Notes: generated by a model from the letters alone, not told the origin. A stretch of DNA of 64,000 bases from Amoeboaphelidium protococcarum X5 (GCA_023515725.1 JALDTO010000213.1:566280-630279); one strand, 5' to 3'; counted from the first letter of the stretch, positions 1-15,513 are shown. Made by a program: numbers and translations.

Positions 1-94
1 CAAAATGCCTGCTCAGCCTGGTATGAAAGTGTACGATCTGACTGTGCCATCTACTCTGAATTTCGGCTTGGCTAATGGTTTGCATGTATTTGAC
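1..94 (+). mobile_element. Intein C-terminal splicing region (blocks F/G) inserted in the RPC1 bridge helix
   Basis: [23 protein letters not shown] directly precedes TAETGY, where RPC1 should read GLVDTAVK. It matches the intein consensus VYDLTV..HNF.ANG...HN/(C,S,T), with Thr at +1. Confidence 0.85.
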
Positions 95-1717
95 ACGGCC
101 GAGACTGGTTACATGCAGCGTAGACTGATGAAAGCATTGGAAGATTTATCCGTGAGCTATGACTATAGTGTGAGAAGTAGTGTCGGATCAATGATACAGT
201 TTGAGTATGGAAATGATAAACTGGACCCCACGTCAATGGAAGGTAATGATGTGCCTGTGGATTTTAATAAGAATTTTCTGGCTTGTATGAATCTGCATAG
301 AGCGCAAGATGATGATCTGCTTCTATTACCAGATTAAGTATGTGACTTGGTTAAGCAATTGGTCATGGATGGAGAGTTTCTATAGCATTGCCCTTAGCAG
401 TATGGCGACAGTGTAGTTGCTTTTGTACAAGATAAAGTGGCTCCTAAGGCATCGACTCCTGGCTTTAAAGTCACGCAAAAGATATTGGAAAACTTTGTCA
501 ACGTTTGCCGGCGAAAGTATTACAAGTCCAAGATTGAACCTGGATCTGCTGTGGGGGCTCTTGCGGCGCAATCTATTGGTGAGCCAGGTACGTAGATGAC
601 TTTGAAAACTTTTCACTTTGCCGGTGTCGCGTCTATGAGCATCACCTTAGGTGTGCCGCGTATTAAGGAGATTATCAATGCCTCGAAGCTCATCAAGACT
701 CCGATCATCACGGCTAAACTTGTTAAGGATGATAATCAGACTGTGGCTAGAATTGTCAAGGGAAGAATTGAGGCGACCAAGTTGGGTCAAGTTGTTGAGT
801 ACGTGTAGGAAGTGATATCTGGGTCTGCTTGTTATTTAGACCTGAAGGTTGACTGGGAAGCTATACGCCAGTTGCAACTCGAGATTGATGAGAGTTCAAT
901 ATGTACAGCTATAGCTAAGGCTCCAAAGCTTAAAGTTGGTGCATCAGATATCTAAATGTCAAAGAAGAATCAGGCCATCCGAATCCTGGTGCATGATGCC
1001 AAGAAGGCTGACTCGGCATTCTATGAACTGTAGAGAGTAAAGAGATTGATTACTGATGTTATCATATGCGGAATCCCGACTGTGAATAGAGCTGTGATCA
1101 ATGAACAGCAGGGCAAGAGCGGTCATTATGAACTTTTAGCTGAAGGTTATGGTTTGCGATAGGTGATGACCACCGATGGTGTCGTTGGACTAGAGTCGAC
1201 TAGTAATCACATTGCTGAAGTTGAGTCGGTGCTGGGTATTGAAGCTGCCAGATAATCCATCATCGACTAGATTCAGTATACTATGAGTAGTCACGGTATG
1301 ACAATTGATTCTAGGCATGTGATGATTCTGGCTGATATCATGACATTCAAGGGTGAAGTATTGGGCATAACGCGATTCGGAATTGCCAAGATGAAAGACA
1401 GTGTTCTCATGTTGGCCTCATTTGAGAAGACCACTGATCACCTCTTTGACGCGTCCACCTACTCTAAAGTTGACCACATTGAGGGAGTATCTGAGCGTAT
1501 TATCATGGGTGTGCACATGAATGTCGGTACTGGAGCGTTCAAGATTCTTCAATAAGTTGACTTGTCCGAAGATAAGAACTGTGGCAGTGATTAAGGTTCT
1601 TCGGCATTATAGAAGAAATCTTATCCATTAAAAGATCAAAAGTAGCAGTTATTATATCAAAGACCTTTGCTGTTTGATGTGCCCGAGTATCATCCATCCA
1701 TCTTTGCACAAGGTTGA
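1..1717 (+). CDS. RPC1: RNA polymerase III largest subunit, C-terminal part (5' truncated; begins inside an intein)
   Basis: ORFs 5-337, 596-808 and 1283-1555 share one frame joined by TAA/TAG. Motifs [28 protein letters not shown](TAG)[13 protein letters not shown] and [27 protein letters not shown] are Pol III-type. TGA at 1715-1717. Confidence 0.95.
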
Positions 1718-6298: not shown

Positions 6299-6670
6299 TC
6301 TCTCTCGATATGTAGGATGAGTTTGTGATTGCAACTTGCTTCGCCCAGTTAAGGTTTGCAGCAGGAAGGTAAGATTGTATTATTCGTTGTAGTAACTTTT
6401 GTAAACAGATGTAGGTGACATATTGCTCTGGTTGCTCTTACTTTGTCCTCTGGTCTATCTAATCCGTTTCCTCTAACTATGTTCCCCATCTCTGATTCTC
6501 AATCACTCGCTGTTGGTGCATTCCTCTCGCCTGCACAGGTCTGTCTAAGGCTCTCCCCCTCCTCATGCTCGTTACTTGTCTCTCTGCGTTGCTTAATGGT
6601 TACCTAGTTATGACTGATACTCTCAAGACTTCTCTGCTTATGTCTGGTTTATGGCATGTTTTGGCTTAAT

Positions 6671-6816
6671 TCGTCTCTTTCTGCTTATTGGTACTTAAAG
6701 TCTGGTCTTATCCTGTACTTTCCTCTGCATACCTCCTGTCGTCTCTTTCTGCTTATTGGTACTTAAAGTCTGGTCTTATCCTGTACTTTCCTCTGCATAC
6801 CTCCTGTCGTCTCTTT
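6671..6816 (+). repeat. 68-bp direct tandem duplication (~2.1 copies)
   Basis: Unit tcgtctctttctgcttattggtacttaaagtctggtcttatcctgtactttcctctgcatacctcctg starts at 6671 and 6739; a partial third copy starts at 6807. Confidence 0.9.
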
Positions 6817-7723
6817 TCCTCTGGCTTCTGCTTTTATCTGGCTGGTGTATACTCTTGCACGCGCTCCTGAATATCATCCATTCAACTGCACATTCTAATC
6901 CTCTGCTGTTTCCTCTGTCGGTATCTTTCCTTTTTGCTTCTCCGTCTGTCTCCTCTCGGCTGGTATCCTCTACCTCTATCTGCATCTCTCTCTCTCTCTC
7001 TGCTGGTATACTCTTGCCCCCTCTCTCTGTCTGTGTCTCTGGTGATATCCTCTTCCTCTGTCTGTCTGTCTGTCTGTCTCTCTGCTGGCGTGCCTGTACC
7101 TCGCTGGGTCACTTAGGTTGTTGAATAATGATGGTAGTTAATTTTATTTCTTTCTCTTTTAAACAAGGCTTTTTTTAAACTTTGTTTTATCTTTTAATTC
7201 ATCTCAGACTATTAGATTATACCACCAGCTTCAACTATACAGTACCAAAGTCCAAACAATCTTGCTTCACGCTCACTGCGATCCTCGGCGTCGCCATTCT
7301 TGCATGTTCCACTTCAGACAAAGAGTGATATAGTGGGATGCTTACTACATGCTCGCACTACTGTATTCGACAGTATGGTGAACATTATTGACTGAACTTA
7401 TCGCACGGCATTCATTTTATGCTACTCCCTGACAACATCTGTTGATTGTCGTCTAAAACAGTAAAAGTATAATGATCAGTCAGTCACATAGAGCGGACTA
7501 GAAAAACTTTAGAGATTGATTATACAATGGTATTGCCAGGTAGATCAAACTTATAGTCTTCTTCAGTGGGAATCGTTCCAACAGCGGGCGCTCAATATAA
7601 ACTCATCACATAACAGCCCGCAAACTAAACAAAGCCACCGAGCGCGTGTGATTGGAGCGTTTATCAATTCAAAGTCATTGGCGCTTACATCATCGAAACG
7701 ACGATTCGAAACAGGAAGAGAAA

Positions 7724-8432
7724 ATGCGTCGCTGGGTTTCTCTTCTAGTCTACGTCATTGTGATTACTTTATCTGTACAAGTAGTCAAAATTCTGCTCTC
7801 TACTACACGTTTAAATACTACTAGCAATTCGCTACTTGCCACTTTTCGCAAGTTTTATAGTACTACCGCATCATCTAACATGGCTGCCAAGAGTTTTCAT
7901 GATTTCACCGTGAACGACATCAAGCATCAACCGTATGATCTTGCTCAGTTGAAGGGAAAGGTGAGTCTTATTCAACTAATTGATTGTTTTAATTCGTATT
8001 CGCTCATTCGCACTTTGTAAGTAGGTTGTGCTAGTTGTGAACACTGCTTCCGAGTGTGGATTCACCAATCAGTACGATGGTCTGCAAAAGCTGTATGACT
8101 AGTACAAGGACAAGGGATTCACCGTGTTGGGATTTCCATGTAATCAGTTTGGTGGTCAGGAGCCTGGCAGTGAAGATTAGATTCAGAATTTCTGCACCAC
8201 CCGCTTCAATGTCAAGTTCCCGCTGATGGAGAAGGTTGACGTAAATGGCGACAACACCCACCCGCTGTACCAGTGGATGAAGTCCCAAAAGTCTTAACTG
8301 ATGATGGAGCGCATCAAGTGGAACTTTGAAAAGTTTCTGATCGGCAAGGATGGCCAGGTTGTCGATCGTTTCGCGTCAACCACCACACCGGACTCGATTG
8401 CAAAGAACGTTGAGAAGGAGCTGAGCAAGTGA
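7724..8432 (+). CDS. GPX: Glutathione peroxidase (Cys-type GPX); intron 7961-8024; alternative start at 7880
   Basis: LKGK|[31 protein letters not shown] and [10 protein letters not shown] motifs; GTGAGT...TAG intron; TGA 8430-8432. Confidence 0.93.
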
Positions 8433-8852
8433 CTATCTAGCGGTTCTCTTTGCAAATTGTGACAATCAATTTTCTGAAACTGAATATAAATAATGATTAC
8501 TGAAATGCATCTTTACTTTTACATTATACGCCTTCAATTTACAAAAACGGTTATAGAATTAACGATGAACTTGGCGTCAAACGATGATAATCCAATTGCA
8601 AATGGGCTTTCTTACAAGACCAGATTGATCGAAGTGGTGGCAAACTAGTGATGAAGCGATCAATCGCCATCGCGTTTTCTCTCTCGCTTTCTTGTTTTAA
8701 ACTTTCCTGTTTGCGCTCTTTCACGCTTTTGATCCTTTGTGTGTTTTCATTCAATTCCTCATAGAAATTGCCAGGTATTTGTGTATTCTGCATTAGATTT
8801 AGTCTAGTCTGTAAATAGAAATTACATTGCAATAATTAAATCTTTTTGTAAA

Positions 8853-10139
8853 ATGATGGCAAGTAATAATGGATAGTAGCAGGAGGAGGATTTGAGTAAG
8901 ATTGTGGCTCAAGATCCTCTGAGCAGACTGGAAAACTTCTCCATCATCGAGTCTACGCTGAGAGAGGGTGAGCAGTTTGCTAATGCATTCTTTGATCGCG
9001 AGAAGAAGATTGAGATTGCCAAAGCTCTGGATGAATTCGGTGTGGAGTACATTGAGCTGACCAGTCCTGCTGCCTCTCAGCAATCGCGGGAGGACTGTGA
9101 GGCCATCTGCAAGTTGGGGCTGAAGAGCAAGATACTGACGCACGTTAGATGCCACATGGATGATGCTAGAATTGCGGTAGAGACTGGTGTGGATGGCTTG
9201 GATGTTGTCATTGGTACTTCATCTATTTTGAGAGAATTCTCTCATGGTAAGGATATGAATTATATTACGGAGAAGGCGATCGAAGTGGTCAACTATATCA
9301 AGAGCAAAGGATTGGAGGTGAGATTTAGCAGTGAGGATTCCTTCAGATCCGATCTGGTTGATCTGCTGAACATTTATAGAACCATGGATAGAATTGGTGT
9401 AAATCGTGTTGGTATTGCGGATACTGTCGGAGTGGCTAGTCCTCGCCAAGTGTATGAGTTGGTACGCACTCTGCGAAGTGTTGTCAGTTGTGATATTGAG
9501 TGTCACTTCCACAATGACACTGGATGTGCAATAGCGAATGCATATGCTGCACTCGAAGCTGGAGCTACTCATATCGATACTTCGGTACTAGGTATCGGGG
9601 AGCGTAACGGTATTACTCCTCTTGGTGGCCTGGTGGCTAGAATGTACACTGTGAACAAGGATTACATTAAAAGCAAGTACAAGTTGCACATGCTGCGTGA
9701 TATTGAGAATCTGGTCGCTGATGCCGTGTCTGTGCAAGTCCCGTTCAACAACTACATTACGGGATACTGTGCATTTACCCACAAGGCAGGTATTCATGCC
9801 AAGGCCATATTGAATAATCCATCCACTTATGAAATTCTGAAGCCTGAAGACTTTGGTATGACTCGCTACGTGTCCATTGGACATCGTCTGACTGGGTGGA
9901 ATGCTGTGAAGAATCGTGTTTAGTAACTCGGCTTGCACTTGACTGATGACCAGATCAAGTCTGTGACTGCGCAGATCAAATTGTTGGCTGATGTTAAACC
10001 TCAATCTGTGGAAGATGTTGATCAGCTGTTAAAGTAGTATCACAGCGAGTTTATTGAGTAGAACGGAGTGGATGGGTAGTAGTACTAGTAATAGTAAGAC
10101 GATTAGGTGGACGGTACAGTAGTTGTAGTTGAACAATGA
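8853..10139 (+). CDS. LYS20: Homocitrate synthase (alpha-aminoadipate lysine pathway)
   Basis: [30 protein letters not shown] and [14 protein letters not shown] motifs; extends through TAG/TAA (NRVQQLGL) to TGA 10137-10139. Confidence 0.96.
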
Positions 10140-10283
10140 TTATAAATCATGATTCTTCTTTCGTAGTACAAAACGTTGTTGCAATTTGGTTTTATTTTCA
10201 TTTTGAATGGCCTCAATAACAACAAGCTTCGTACTTAATATTTACTAATTCATCGATCGTTCGTTTAATCTGCGGTAGTCGCA

Positions 10284-10603
10284 ATGCAAAATTTAGCGCG
10301 AGATTTGCTCACAGAGTAATGCGTCGTGGCCAATCGCTGTCATGCATCTCAGGTCAAGTTGCAATCGGAAATTGAGCGTCTTAATGCTGGTATGTATTCG
10401 TTCATTATTCCGCTATAAGGTTCACGTAAAACTTTATTGTAGAGTTGTAATTGATCCAGGATACCGTTCACCGTCCGCAGTTGCAGGAGAGTATTACAAA
10501 ACTGCGCGATGCTCAAGATCGATTGATTAACGTCAACTAACGCCTGCATAATATTAATAATGGATTGAAGATGTATAAAGAAGATTTTAATAGTAGTAAT
10601 TGA
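10284..10603 (+). CDS. Snapin-like BLOC-1 subunit (~88 aa); intron 10390-10442
   Basis: Spliced translation SQVKLQSEIERLNAE|LQLIQDTVHRPQLQESITKLRDAQDRLINVNQRLHNINNGL resembles the Snapin coiled coil; GTATGT...TGTAG intron; start uncertain. Confidence 0.6.
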
Positions 10604-10627
10604 ATGCTATTGATTAATACAAATTTT

Positions 10628-12661
10628 TCATGGTTAATTATCATCGTCTTCATCTTATTCCGCACTGTCAGTCAACTCTGCTAGATCAAGTATCTAAATT
10701 CTCTTGTCATTATAGACGGCGGCAAGATTTCTTTTTATACTGATGGCTAGTCTGCAATTACTCTTAACTTTGCACCTTGACTTGAATGATAATTTCTTGG
10801 TCTCATTCAACTCTTGTATATCCAGTGCAGTAATATAATCGCAATAGTCAGTTTAAGACGTGATGAGGAGTATAACAAGATCTTGGTTCAGAATTTAGGC
10901 ACTTTTAATAGTCACATCCTGTGGAATCTTATACTCAAACTTATGCTCCTGGTGTAATAGAACGAATATATTATTCTGCACACTGACCAGAATCAGATAA
11001 TTATCAACTTTGCTTCTTATAGAGCACAATGTATCAACCTTCTCCTGAAATCCAAATGAAGTTTATAATTCACCTAAATTTGACGAATAAAATGACATTT
11101 GCAGATACTTAGTTAGTATTCCCATACAACCATCAATTTTCTAACAAAGCAGATTGAACATCTTTTAATCAATAACCCGATCAACCACCATCTTGGTCGA
11201 GTCAACGTTCAACATCTTGCACTGTTGATAATTCACCATGTCATAAGAGGACATGAAGCGCAAAAGCTGCTCCACATCAAATTCTGGACCACCAACCTGC
11301 TCTACAATAGAGTTGAATTCCTCATCTGTTAAGAGTTGAGACCGTTCACTATCTTCCATAAGAATTAAGCAGGACGTGATAAACTTTACAAATACCTCAT
11401 ACCCCACAACAATACTCTGGATACCACTAAGAACTTTAGTACTGAATTCATGTAGCTGATAGCCATACAATCTGCGAGTCTTCATTTCCTCTAATACAGA
11501 TTAATGAGCATAGTCTTGATCTTTAGTATCACTGAGAAACGCCAAGTATAGAGCCTTGCACAGTATAGAGTCATAAATGTCAGCATATCTCTAGAGTGAA
11601 TCTTGTTCCAGCTACTTAATCAAGTCGATTTAAAGTTGTTTAACTTGAGTCAATTGAGAGATCATCTATTTCAAGCCACCACTGCCTTTAATAAAAGTGG
11701 TTACAAGTTCACCGTAGTCCAATCGAGTGCTTTCAATGACTTGATATAACAAGTTGAACGGTTCAACCTGCTAATTTATACAAATCATATCAAATCTTTT
11801 CATCTAATCTTTAATTTGTACATGAATCTTTTAACAACCTTCCTGGATATTATTAATCTACTATATGGCAGTCTGATACTAATTATTGAGATTCATCATT
11901 CCAATAGCTAAATCTTTCAGCAATACCCATACACGATTGCTAAATTGAGGCATACTGAAAGACAATACACCCATCGTATTATCACTCTTCTATATCACAA
12001 CATCCAGAATAGAACCATCTTGAGACAACTGTGCTTCATAACAACTCTAAACTTGATGAGGAATATCTACAGTGCAAACTTGTACCAGACCAAGTACAGA
12101 TATAGTGAGTTTTTGAGACTATTGATTGAACTAAAGGCAAAGTGGCAAATTCAGACTGACAGAATACTTGAACTCGTCCCAAATGGAGTACTCAGATGAG
12201 GTGATAAATTGGTCTTTATTGTTCTATTCCTTATGATCATCTTCTTCATCATCACCATGTAGAGTCAAATGAACACATAGACACACTATGTTCCATTTGT
12301 CATCACCATTTGAGAGCTCTTATTACATAGTCTTATCTTGCAACAACTAAGAGAAATCGTAGACTAGCGAATGCTGATTGCCACTTGATTATAGTTGCTA
12401 TTGCTTTTATGGCAAAAGACTCTCTGTATGCAAGACCTTGTTACAACTTCCATCTAGCAGAAACCGACCGTTATATGTAAACCATATAGGTGTAGATTCA
12501 AACTAATGTTCTACTACTTGGTCTCCATTGATTCTGTATAATCTCACAGGACGCTAATCTTTACTGCAGTCATACACAACAAACATATCTGAAGATGGAG
12601 ACCACTATAACACTGCATTCTTGCATCCGCCCTTGATTTTAAAGTCCTCCAAAACTTGCAT
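10628..12661 (-). CDS. APC4: Anaphase-promoting complex subunit 4-like protein (~677 aa)
   Basis: N-terminal LQWSPSSDMF...LYRING resembles the Apc4 WD40 start; helical middle (ORF 11165-11485 in frame); acidic end AVYNDKRIQILDL..EQDEDDD; TGA 10628-10630. Confidence 0.6.
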
Positions 12662-12933
12662 ATTGACTACTAAAAGACCCTGGGACTGCTACAATGATGA
12701 TAAATGGACGTATAGATAATACAGGTAAGATGTCCTAACAGAAAGAAGCTTCTACGTAACTTTTAAAGATGAAACAAGAACAGAAACGCGTCGCGGAATT
12801 TTTCGCTCGCTTTGACCGCGTAGAGATTCAACTTGAAAAAGCCTTCAAGTACTTACTACTGAAAATAGAGTACTCATTCAATGTCGATAATAAAAGATAT
12901 AAAATATAAGTAAATGGACAATTCATTGTTATT

Positions 12934-15513
<2,580 letters not shown>

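Follow-up and report, generated by a model that had tools for sequence, protein, structure and literature searches.

Can an intein that lacks the canonical residues at its C-terminal end splice itself out of the active centre of an essential enzyme? The question is raised by the first codons of a stretch of 64,000 nucleotides from the aphelid Amoeboaphelidium protococcarum X5 (assembly GCA_023515725.1, contig JALDTO010000213.1, positions 566280-630279; hereafter the window). The source organism is a fungus-like protist, a phagotrophic parasite of algae. Canonical inteins end in His-Asn and are released by cyclization of the Asn. The window opens within a gene for RPC1, the largest subunit of RNA polymerase III (Pol III), on the last codons of an insert that ends in Phe-Asp. 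We consider it very likely that this insert is a bona fide, fixed and splicing-competent intein of 420 residues, a member of a family found in giant-virus RPB1, and that it homed into RPC1 from a giant virus. Its activity is suggested by the selection acting on it and by conservation throughout the family.

The insert and its host gene

The insert ends in frame 2 of the window, where the codons CAT (83-85, His), GTA (86-88, Val), TTT (89-91, Phe) and GAC (92-94, Asp) are followed by ACG (95-97, Thr). The 31 insert residues encoded in the window pass the NCBIfam profile TIGR01443 (intein_Cterm) with 19.3 bits against a cutoff of 15.6. The match covers only profile positions 1-19 of 24, so that the unmatched part is the canonical His-Asn end. 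Upstream sequence is available on the same contig: in the extended locus L167, whose position 1149 is window position 1 and whose overlap with the window is identical, nucleotides 1-1148 encode intein residues 7-389. This flank ends 18 nt short of the N-terminal junction. A second copy of the gene (L168, GCA_023515745.1) extends 33 nt further and reads DTSVK/SVTGDTALVI, the slash marking the splice point. The predicted intein runs from Ser1 to Asp420, has Thr at position +1 and is inserted between the Lys and the Thr of DTAVK/TAETGY. Its frame contains neither a frameshift nor a TGA over the 420 codons. An N-extein ending in DTSVK or DTAVK, when joined to the C-extein TAETGY, rebuilds the canonical bridge helix and a colinear host protein.

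The same intein-extein junction was found in an independent assembly (Logan contig L001, 96% nucleotide identity) and in three NCBI contigs, that is, in four independent contigs altogether, and it is therefore not an assembly artefact. A third copy (L169), from the same assembly as the window, also carries the intein, and no intein-free RPC1 was seen among the A. protococcarum copies examined. A word search with a fragment spanning the N-junction listed only intein-free RPC1 fragments. The exhaustive search of representative proteins did not return the full-length A. protococcarum RPC1, which presumably stands behind an intein-free representative.

The host gene is a true cellular RPC1 orthologue. 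In comparisons with proteins of the PDB, the piece encoded at window 95-334 scores 73 bits against yeast RPC1 and 70 bits against human RPC1, the best RPB1 reaching no more than 51 bits. The piece encoded at 1271-1552 scores 137 and 135 bits against RPC1, with everything else at or below 70 bits. Thr+1 aligns with residue 879 of yeast RPC1 and residue 865 of human RPC1, both of which lie in the bridge helix. The annotated product has 1824 residues, with Pfam domains in the order Rpb1_1 to Rpb1_4, Intein_splicing (PF14890) and Rpb1_5. The two exteins of 864 and 540 residues add up to 1404 residues, a normal length for an RPC1, and the annotated gene end (position 2865 of L167) coincides with window position 1717.

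The initial annotation, made from the window alone, had read the terminal Asp, the penultimate Phe, a Leu in place of the block-F His and the Thr at +1, and had placed the insert in the bridge helix of the largest Pol III subunit. Frame 2 gives the identical string, the scores of 135-137 bits against RPC1 and of at most 70 bits against other subunits bear out the host, and the N-junction of the second copy fixes the site between Lys and Thr. The N-terminal Hint blocks and the LAGLIDADG endonuclease which that annotation had anticipated upstream are both there.

Reading this gene requires a deviant genetic code. Unless TAA and TAG are taken as sense codons, the RPC1 frame does not stay open to the TGA at 1715-1717, and the window holds 64 long open frames under translation table 6 vs. 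4 under the standard code. The genome of A. protococcarum therefore reads TAA and TAG as Gln and has TGA as its sole stop. The C-extein contains 14 such in-frame codons, and one of them, a TAG where the trigger-loop motif has its invariant Gln, directly demonstrates that TAG means Gln in this genome. The TAA at 335-337 is a further example of an in-frame Gln codon. Real genes of the window contain 10-48 in-frame TAA or TAG codons each, so that finders of open reading frames (ORFs) that use the standard code shred every gene; the Logan gene calls on L001 span TAG and stop at TAA, as if TAG were sense. This accounts for the lack of any match in exact look-ups with stop-free pieces of window genes; the NCBI products are full-length proteins in code 6. 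Search queries were stop-free protein pieces only, and translation with code 6 was confined to scripts.

Catalytic residues, selection and splicing

Related inteins provide 206 distinct C-junctions and, where the full intein was recovered, 148 N-junctions, against which the residues of the aphelid intein can be read. All 206 C-junctions have Asp as the terminal residue, Thr at +1 and the block-F Asp (position F4), which the aphelid intein has in VYDLTV. The block-F His position is occupied by Leu in 183 of the 206 and by His in none. The penultimate position is never His: it holds Arg in 130, Val in 60, Tyr in 11, Ala in 3 and Phe in 2. At the other end, the first residue is Ser in 148 of 148 inteins, the aphelid Ser1 being read in L168. 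Among the 106 block-B motifs recognized in the 148 full inteins, 93 are Thr-Glu-Ser-Lys and 10 are Thr-x-Ser-His; the Lys aligns with the His of TSGH or TGSH in the solved inteins PI-PkoII and TFIIB. Since the Asp/Thr junction and the lack of the block-F and penultimate histidines are invariant across the family, Phe-Asp in place of His-Asn is a family trait, neither an oddity nor a decay of this gene.

The aphelid intein has the marks of a class 1 intein: an insertion whose removal restores the host protein, Ser1, the block-F Asp, Thr+1 and a match to a curated intein profile. Its block B reads Val-Glu-Ser-Lys rather than Thr-x-x-His, and its block G reads Phe-Asp rather than a penultimate His followed by a terminal Asn. 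P0068, the viral relative nearest to the aphelid intein, likewise has Val at the block-B Thr position.

Ratios of nonsynonymous to synonymous substitution rates (dN/dS) were obtained from three A. protococcarum copies, between which dS is 0.17-0.33 (Table 1). The splicing domain is under strong purifying selection, nearly as tight as that on the polymerase, and the endonuclease is relaxed. The codons of the window and of L001 differ by 46 synonymous and 4 non-synonymous changes. A tight splicing domain combined with a relaxed endonuclease would be the pattern of a fixed intein still obliged to splice. An active LAGLIDADG endonuclease has two motifs, each with a catalytic Asp or Glu. Both motifs are recognizable in the aphelid intein; in all three copies the Glu of motif 1 is replaced by Gln (a TAG codon) and the Asp of motif 2 by Asn, and the endonuclease is about 55-70 residues shorter than in full-length viral members owing to a deletion. 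With both catalytic acids lost and this deletion, the nested homing endonuclease is predicted to be dead, and it would have died before the copies diverged, since the losses are common to all three. The aphelid copy would then represent the expected end state of the homing cycle, with a dead endonuclease and a splicing domain kept by selection on the host protein.

These data bear on the suspicion that the insert is a relic unable to splice, which RPC1 tolerates as a 420-residue insertion or which sits in a pseudogene backed by another copy. Four canonical catalytic positions are indeed non-canonical, the block-B Thr is lost as well and the endonuclease is clearly decaying. However, more than 200 distinct viral RPB1 genes have this non-canonical set without exception, and RPB1 is essential. 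Selection holds the splicing domain at a dN/dS of about 0.07 and the extein at 0.03, with the endonuclease relaxed, and all three genomic copies examined have the intein. Moreover, a 47-kDa insert interrupting the bridge helix in its middle, beside the active centre, is implausible. We regard a relic as very improbable. Protein splicing would also be unnecessary if the segment were an intron or a similar element that is cut out of the RNA. A frame open for 420 codons without TGA, intein blocks conserved with respect to relatives that are only 43-50% identical, and purifying selection at the amino-acid level are not expected of an intron, and the NCBI gene model keeps the segment in the coding sequence. 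An intron is, in our judgement, hardly tenable.

A splicing-competent intein of this composition may work as follows. An N-O acyl shift at Ser1 would come first, with the block-B Lys helping in place of His. Trans-esterification to Thr+1 would give a branched ester, the terminal Asp would cyclize to a succinic anhydride and thereby release the intein, and an O-N shift would restore the continuous bridge helix. The element would have been immobile after the death of its endonuclease, and it would persist because any splicing lesion would destroy Pol III.

The step that departs furthest from textbook chemistry is the third one, and splicing might dispense with Asp cyclization, the branched ester being resolved by hydrolysis or aminolysis, by an extein residue or by a cellular factor. 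This would constitute a new class of inteins. The family as a whole lacks the three histidines that assist the N-terminal acyl shift and Asn cyclization, a carboxylate makes a poor nucleophile if it is not protonated, and the penultimate residue varies among Arg, Val, Tyr, Ala and Phe. On the other hand, the invariance of the terminal Asp in 206 of 206 junctions means that its side chain probably takes part in the chemistry. An Asp-terminated intein is said to splice by the ordinary route. Gln-terminated inteins do so (PMC8175363). A route without cyclization of the Asp thus seems unlikely, and we retain Asp cyclization as the proposed release step.

Relatives in giant viruses and a probable route of transfer

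A scan of viral contigs with a single sequence gave zero matches, whereas a three-sequence alignment of the C-terminal region matched 333 loci there, on as many IMG/VR giant-virus contigs, together with 478 JGI metagenome contigs. In the exhaustive protein search, where the intein made up residues 1-56 of the query, the best 150 representatives listed all match within the intein part, from query residue 35 or earlier. The viral RPB1 inteins have about 480 residues and lie at GLIDTAVK/SVT...NFGLANGL[QH]V[RV]D/T[SA].TGY, the same point of the bridge helix. They pass the Pfam gathering scores of Intein_splicing (45-52 bits vs. 35.8) and LAGLIDADG_3 (56-63 bits vs. 22.5) and align to the solved inteins PI-PkoII and TFIIB. 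The aphelid intein shares with this family the insertion point, the C-terminal signature and a nested position in the tree; its host is not a viral RPB1. A likeness to the inteins of giant-virus RNA polymerases, which the initial annotation had suggested, turned out to be strong by the matches, by the 43-50% identity and by the tree. The family is large and apparently uncharacterized, and it is centred on giant-virus RPB1; it may be catalogued in intein databases.

RPB1 of giant viruses often carries two or three inteins, giving products of 2000-3300 residues (P0068, P0061 and many other matches), and the second intein site is in the trigger-loop region (GE..TQLS/C...). On one giant-virus-like contig (L002; ENA ERZ1714337 contig_2785), which is AT-rich (27% GC), an RPB1-like gene at about 6500-14500 has the same bridge-helix intein with the junction GLIDSAIK/SVTPDT, and a second, canonical intein ending in VHN/T at the trigger-loop site. 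A GIY-YIG endonuclease ORF is also present. The RPB1-like gene contains many frameshifts, probably long-read errors.

In quick trees of 38-49 inteins, with support from the Shimodaira-Hasegawa-like approximate likelihood ratio test (SH-aLRT), the aphelid intein and the P0068 intein are sisters (SH-aLRT 97-99), the aphelid one lying inside the spread of IMG/VR viral sequences. P0068, which is colinear with an IMG/VR protein, is a viral-type RPB1 with several inteins. Identity between the aphelid extein and the viral host proteins is only 24-31%, so that intein and host protein have different histories. One other eukaryotic RPC1 with an intein of this family, P0210, was found on GC-rich contigs of up to 546 kb in JGI metagenomes, and comparison with the PDB identifies it as RPC1 (427 bits vs. 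at most 225 for RPB1). The P0210 endonuclease keeps both catalytic acids, and its deletion boundaries differ from those of the aphelid intein; the deletions at least are therefore independent. The contig of 546 kb, L084 (JGI 3300056825, Ga0558119_00096), is eukaryotic and has 60-67% GC. Its RPC1 at 10001-15586 lacks introns, is 1861 residues long and contains a 390-residue intein of the family, whose endonuclease motifs keep both catalytic acids. The called genes adjoining this RPC1 have no Pfam matches on record.

With relatives that are overwhelmingly viral, and with a second polymerase gene 36 kb away in the window, the gene might be taken for an endogenized giant-virus polymerase or for a chimeric viral-host assembly rather than the host RPC1. 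However, the extein is about twice as similar to yeast or human RPC1 as to any RPB1 and shares only the low identity given above with viral hosts, and TAA and TAG serve as Gln codons at similar density in intein and extein. The adjoining genes are cellular and of fungal type (homocitrate synthase, XPB helicase, chitin synthase, Chs7, uS13, RanBP1 and a POT transporter), and the second polymerase gene encodes RPA2 of Pol I. A chimera is further contradicted by the junction being reproduced in the four independent contigs. The contig is nuclear and eukaryotic, neither human nor viral, and a viral or chimeric origin of the gene is scarcely credible. In sum, the endogenous-virus, intron and pseudogene readings were rejected on the cellular neighbours, the open frame, selection and the invariance of the family.

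We therefore return to a splicing intein in a genuine host gene. It most likely would have arrived by homing from a giant-virus RPB1 into the near-identical bridge-helix site of RPC1 during infection, before the gene copies of A. protococcarum diverged. The viral diversity makes virus to eukaryote the parsimonious direction. A bolder proposal is possible, and we hold it only tentatively, as somewhat doubtful: the Ser...Asp/Thr inteins may be a mechanistically distinct family that splices without the three conserved histidines by means of the block-B Lys and the terminal Asp, possibly in a pH- or condition-dependent manner, and that is the dominant RPB1 intein of lake giant viruses and has entered nuclear Pol III genes in two or more unrelated eukaryotes through cross-paralogue homing at the bridge helix.

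Several points weigh against our preferred account of an active intein acquired from a virus. The aphelid intein is more deviant than most of its relatives, with the block-B Thr changed to Val and a rare penultimate Phe. Both the splicing and the Asp-cyclization step are inferred from sequence. The copy in the window was read from residue 7, residues 1-6 and the N-extein being read only in L168, which is 92% identical over the intein. The trees are unrooted and their deep nodes are weak, so that the direction of transfer is chosen by parsimony rather than proven. Finally, the tree gives no support to one common origin for the two RPC1 inteins, and the approximately unbiased (AU) test does not reject it (AU p = 0.27); with monophyly not rejected, independent acquisition by the two RPC1 genes is not demonstrable.

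The surroundings of RPC1 were compared in L167, L168, L169 and L001, where an order of genes over 20 kb (RPC1, zf-CCCH, GSHPx, homocitrate synthase, XPB, uS13, RanBP1, Chs7) recurs on two contigs from a single assembly and again in another assembly. Copies as diverged as these (dS 0.17-0.33) are consistent with a polyploid or hybrid genome of A. protococcarum. Division 2 chitin synthase (Chitin_synth_2), its export chaperone Chs7 and homocitrate synthase are fungal hallmark genes in this phagotrophic parasite. A homocitrate synthase piece of 347 residues free of stops (window 8880-9920) matches NCBI proteins of A. protococcarum at 100% identity. For a 174-residue piece of RPA2 the score is 156-180 bits with RPA2/RPA135 and 56 bits with RPC2; the code-6 frame of this gene is continuous, and no intein was noticed in it. 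The features are collected in Table 1.

Table 1. Features of the window and parts of the RPC1 gene, with the results of the codon comparison
Feature	Window position	Strand	Codons compared	dN/dS	Remarks
Intein, last 31 codons (blocks F and G)	2-94	+			Ends in Val-Phe-Asp; from translation and TIGR01443
C-terminal splice junction	92-97	+			GAC, Asp420, last residue of predicted intein; ACG, Thr+1, first C-extein residue
RPC1 C-extein	95-1717	+	540	about 0.03	540 codons and TGA; from second half of bridge helix to C-terminus
In-frame TAG	593-595	+			Codon at invariant Gln of trigger-loop motif in RPC1
N-terminal Hint part			129	0.07	
C-terminal Hint part			48	0.04-0.28	
Endonuclease part			237	0.31-0.33	
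Homocitrate synthase	8853-10139				Fungal lysine pathway
Chs7	about 19922-21175	-			Chitin synthase export chaperone
Chitin synthase, division 2	29824-33084	+			Chitin_synth_2
RPA2	37743-41324	-			Pol I subunit; 36 kb from RPC1

Comparison with known inteins

The surveys of 2006 and 2018 located inteins of nuclear RNA polymerases only in second-largest subunits (PMC1635734; PMC5784728). A study of Anaeramoeba from 2023 added RPA1, RPB1 and RPC2, as well as largest subunits of viruses, to the polymerase proteins with inteins, and it makes no mention of RPC1 (PMC10710043). Our search, which covered the literature, found no report of an intein in RPC1 and none of an intein in Amoeboaphelidium. 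What appears to be new here is the host-protein allele, RPC1 in an aphelid, of a large non-canonical intein family. The largest subunit of nuclear RNA polymerase III is a host protein not found in the intein literature searched. The intein may also be one of the more clear-cut examples of exchange between giant viruses and the eukaryotic nucleus, and this across paralogues, from RPB1 to RPC1. More than 200 natural sequences with an Asp end, lost histidines and a block-B Lys in an essential gene could serve as a test system for which catalytic residues are dispensable, and the family may supply cysteine-free (Ser/Thr) inteins for protein engineering.

Other inteins of nuclear polymerases, namely Ddi RPC2, Cre RPB2, Bde RPB2, Pno RPA2 and those of Anaeramoeba RPA1, RPB1 and RPC2, likewise occupy conserved sites near the active centre. 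Shuttling by viruses has been proposed for nuclear RNA polymerase inteins (PMC1635734; PMC10710043).

Among inteins of known structure, PI-PkoII (PDB 2cw7) and the archaeal TFIIB inteins (PDB 5o9i and 5o9j) show homology in blocks A, B, F and G as well as in the endonuclease, and they have in common with the present family an N-terminal nucleophile, a nucleophile at +1 and the block-F Asp. They differ in that Lys stands in place of the block-B His, a penultimate His is lacking and Asp takes the place of the terminal Asn in the family described here.

A cyclizable last residue other than Asn is known from the Pab and Pho PolII inteins (Gln), the Chilo iridescent virus RIR1 intein (Gln) and the RIR1 intein of Carboxydothermus hydrogenoformans (Asp). 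The last of these reportedly splices, according to work by Amitai, Dassa and Pietrokovski in 2004. These are isolated cases that keep the block-B His, whereas in the present family the Asp is invariant in hundreds of sequences and three histidines are lost. The PolII inteins use their C-terminal Gln as an alternative to Asn (PMC8175363). For the other end of the intein, the Tko CDC21-1 intein of Thermococcus kodakarensis offers a parallel, since there a Lys activates the N-terminal junction instead of the block-B His (PMC7765530). That intein is found in an unrelated host protein and lineage and has a canonical C-terminus, and the likeness consists in the use of a Lys.

The closest counterparts are the RPB1 inteins of giant viruses (Nucleocytoviricota), which occur on GVMAG contigs of IMG/VR and in metagenomes of lakes. 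They share with the aphelid intein the insertion point DTAVK/T...TGY, the combination of Hint and LAGLIDADG domains, the C-terminal signature, Ser1, the terminal Asp and Thr+1, they are 43-50% identical to it, and it nests among them. The aphelid intein differs from them in its host, a cellular RPC1 with a paralogous rather than an orthologous site, in an endonuclease that lacks both catalytic acids and about 55-70 residues, and in its block-B Val, its penultimate Phe and its Gln codons TAA and TAG.

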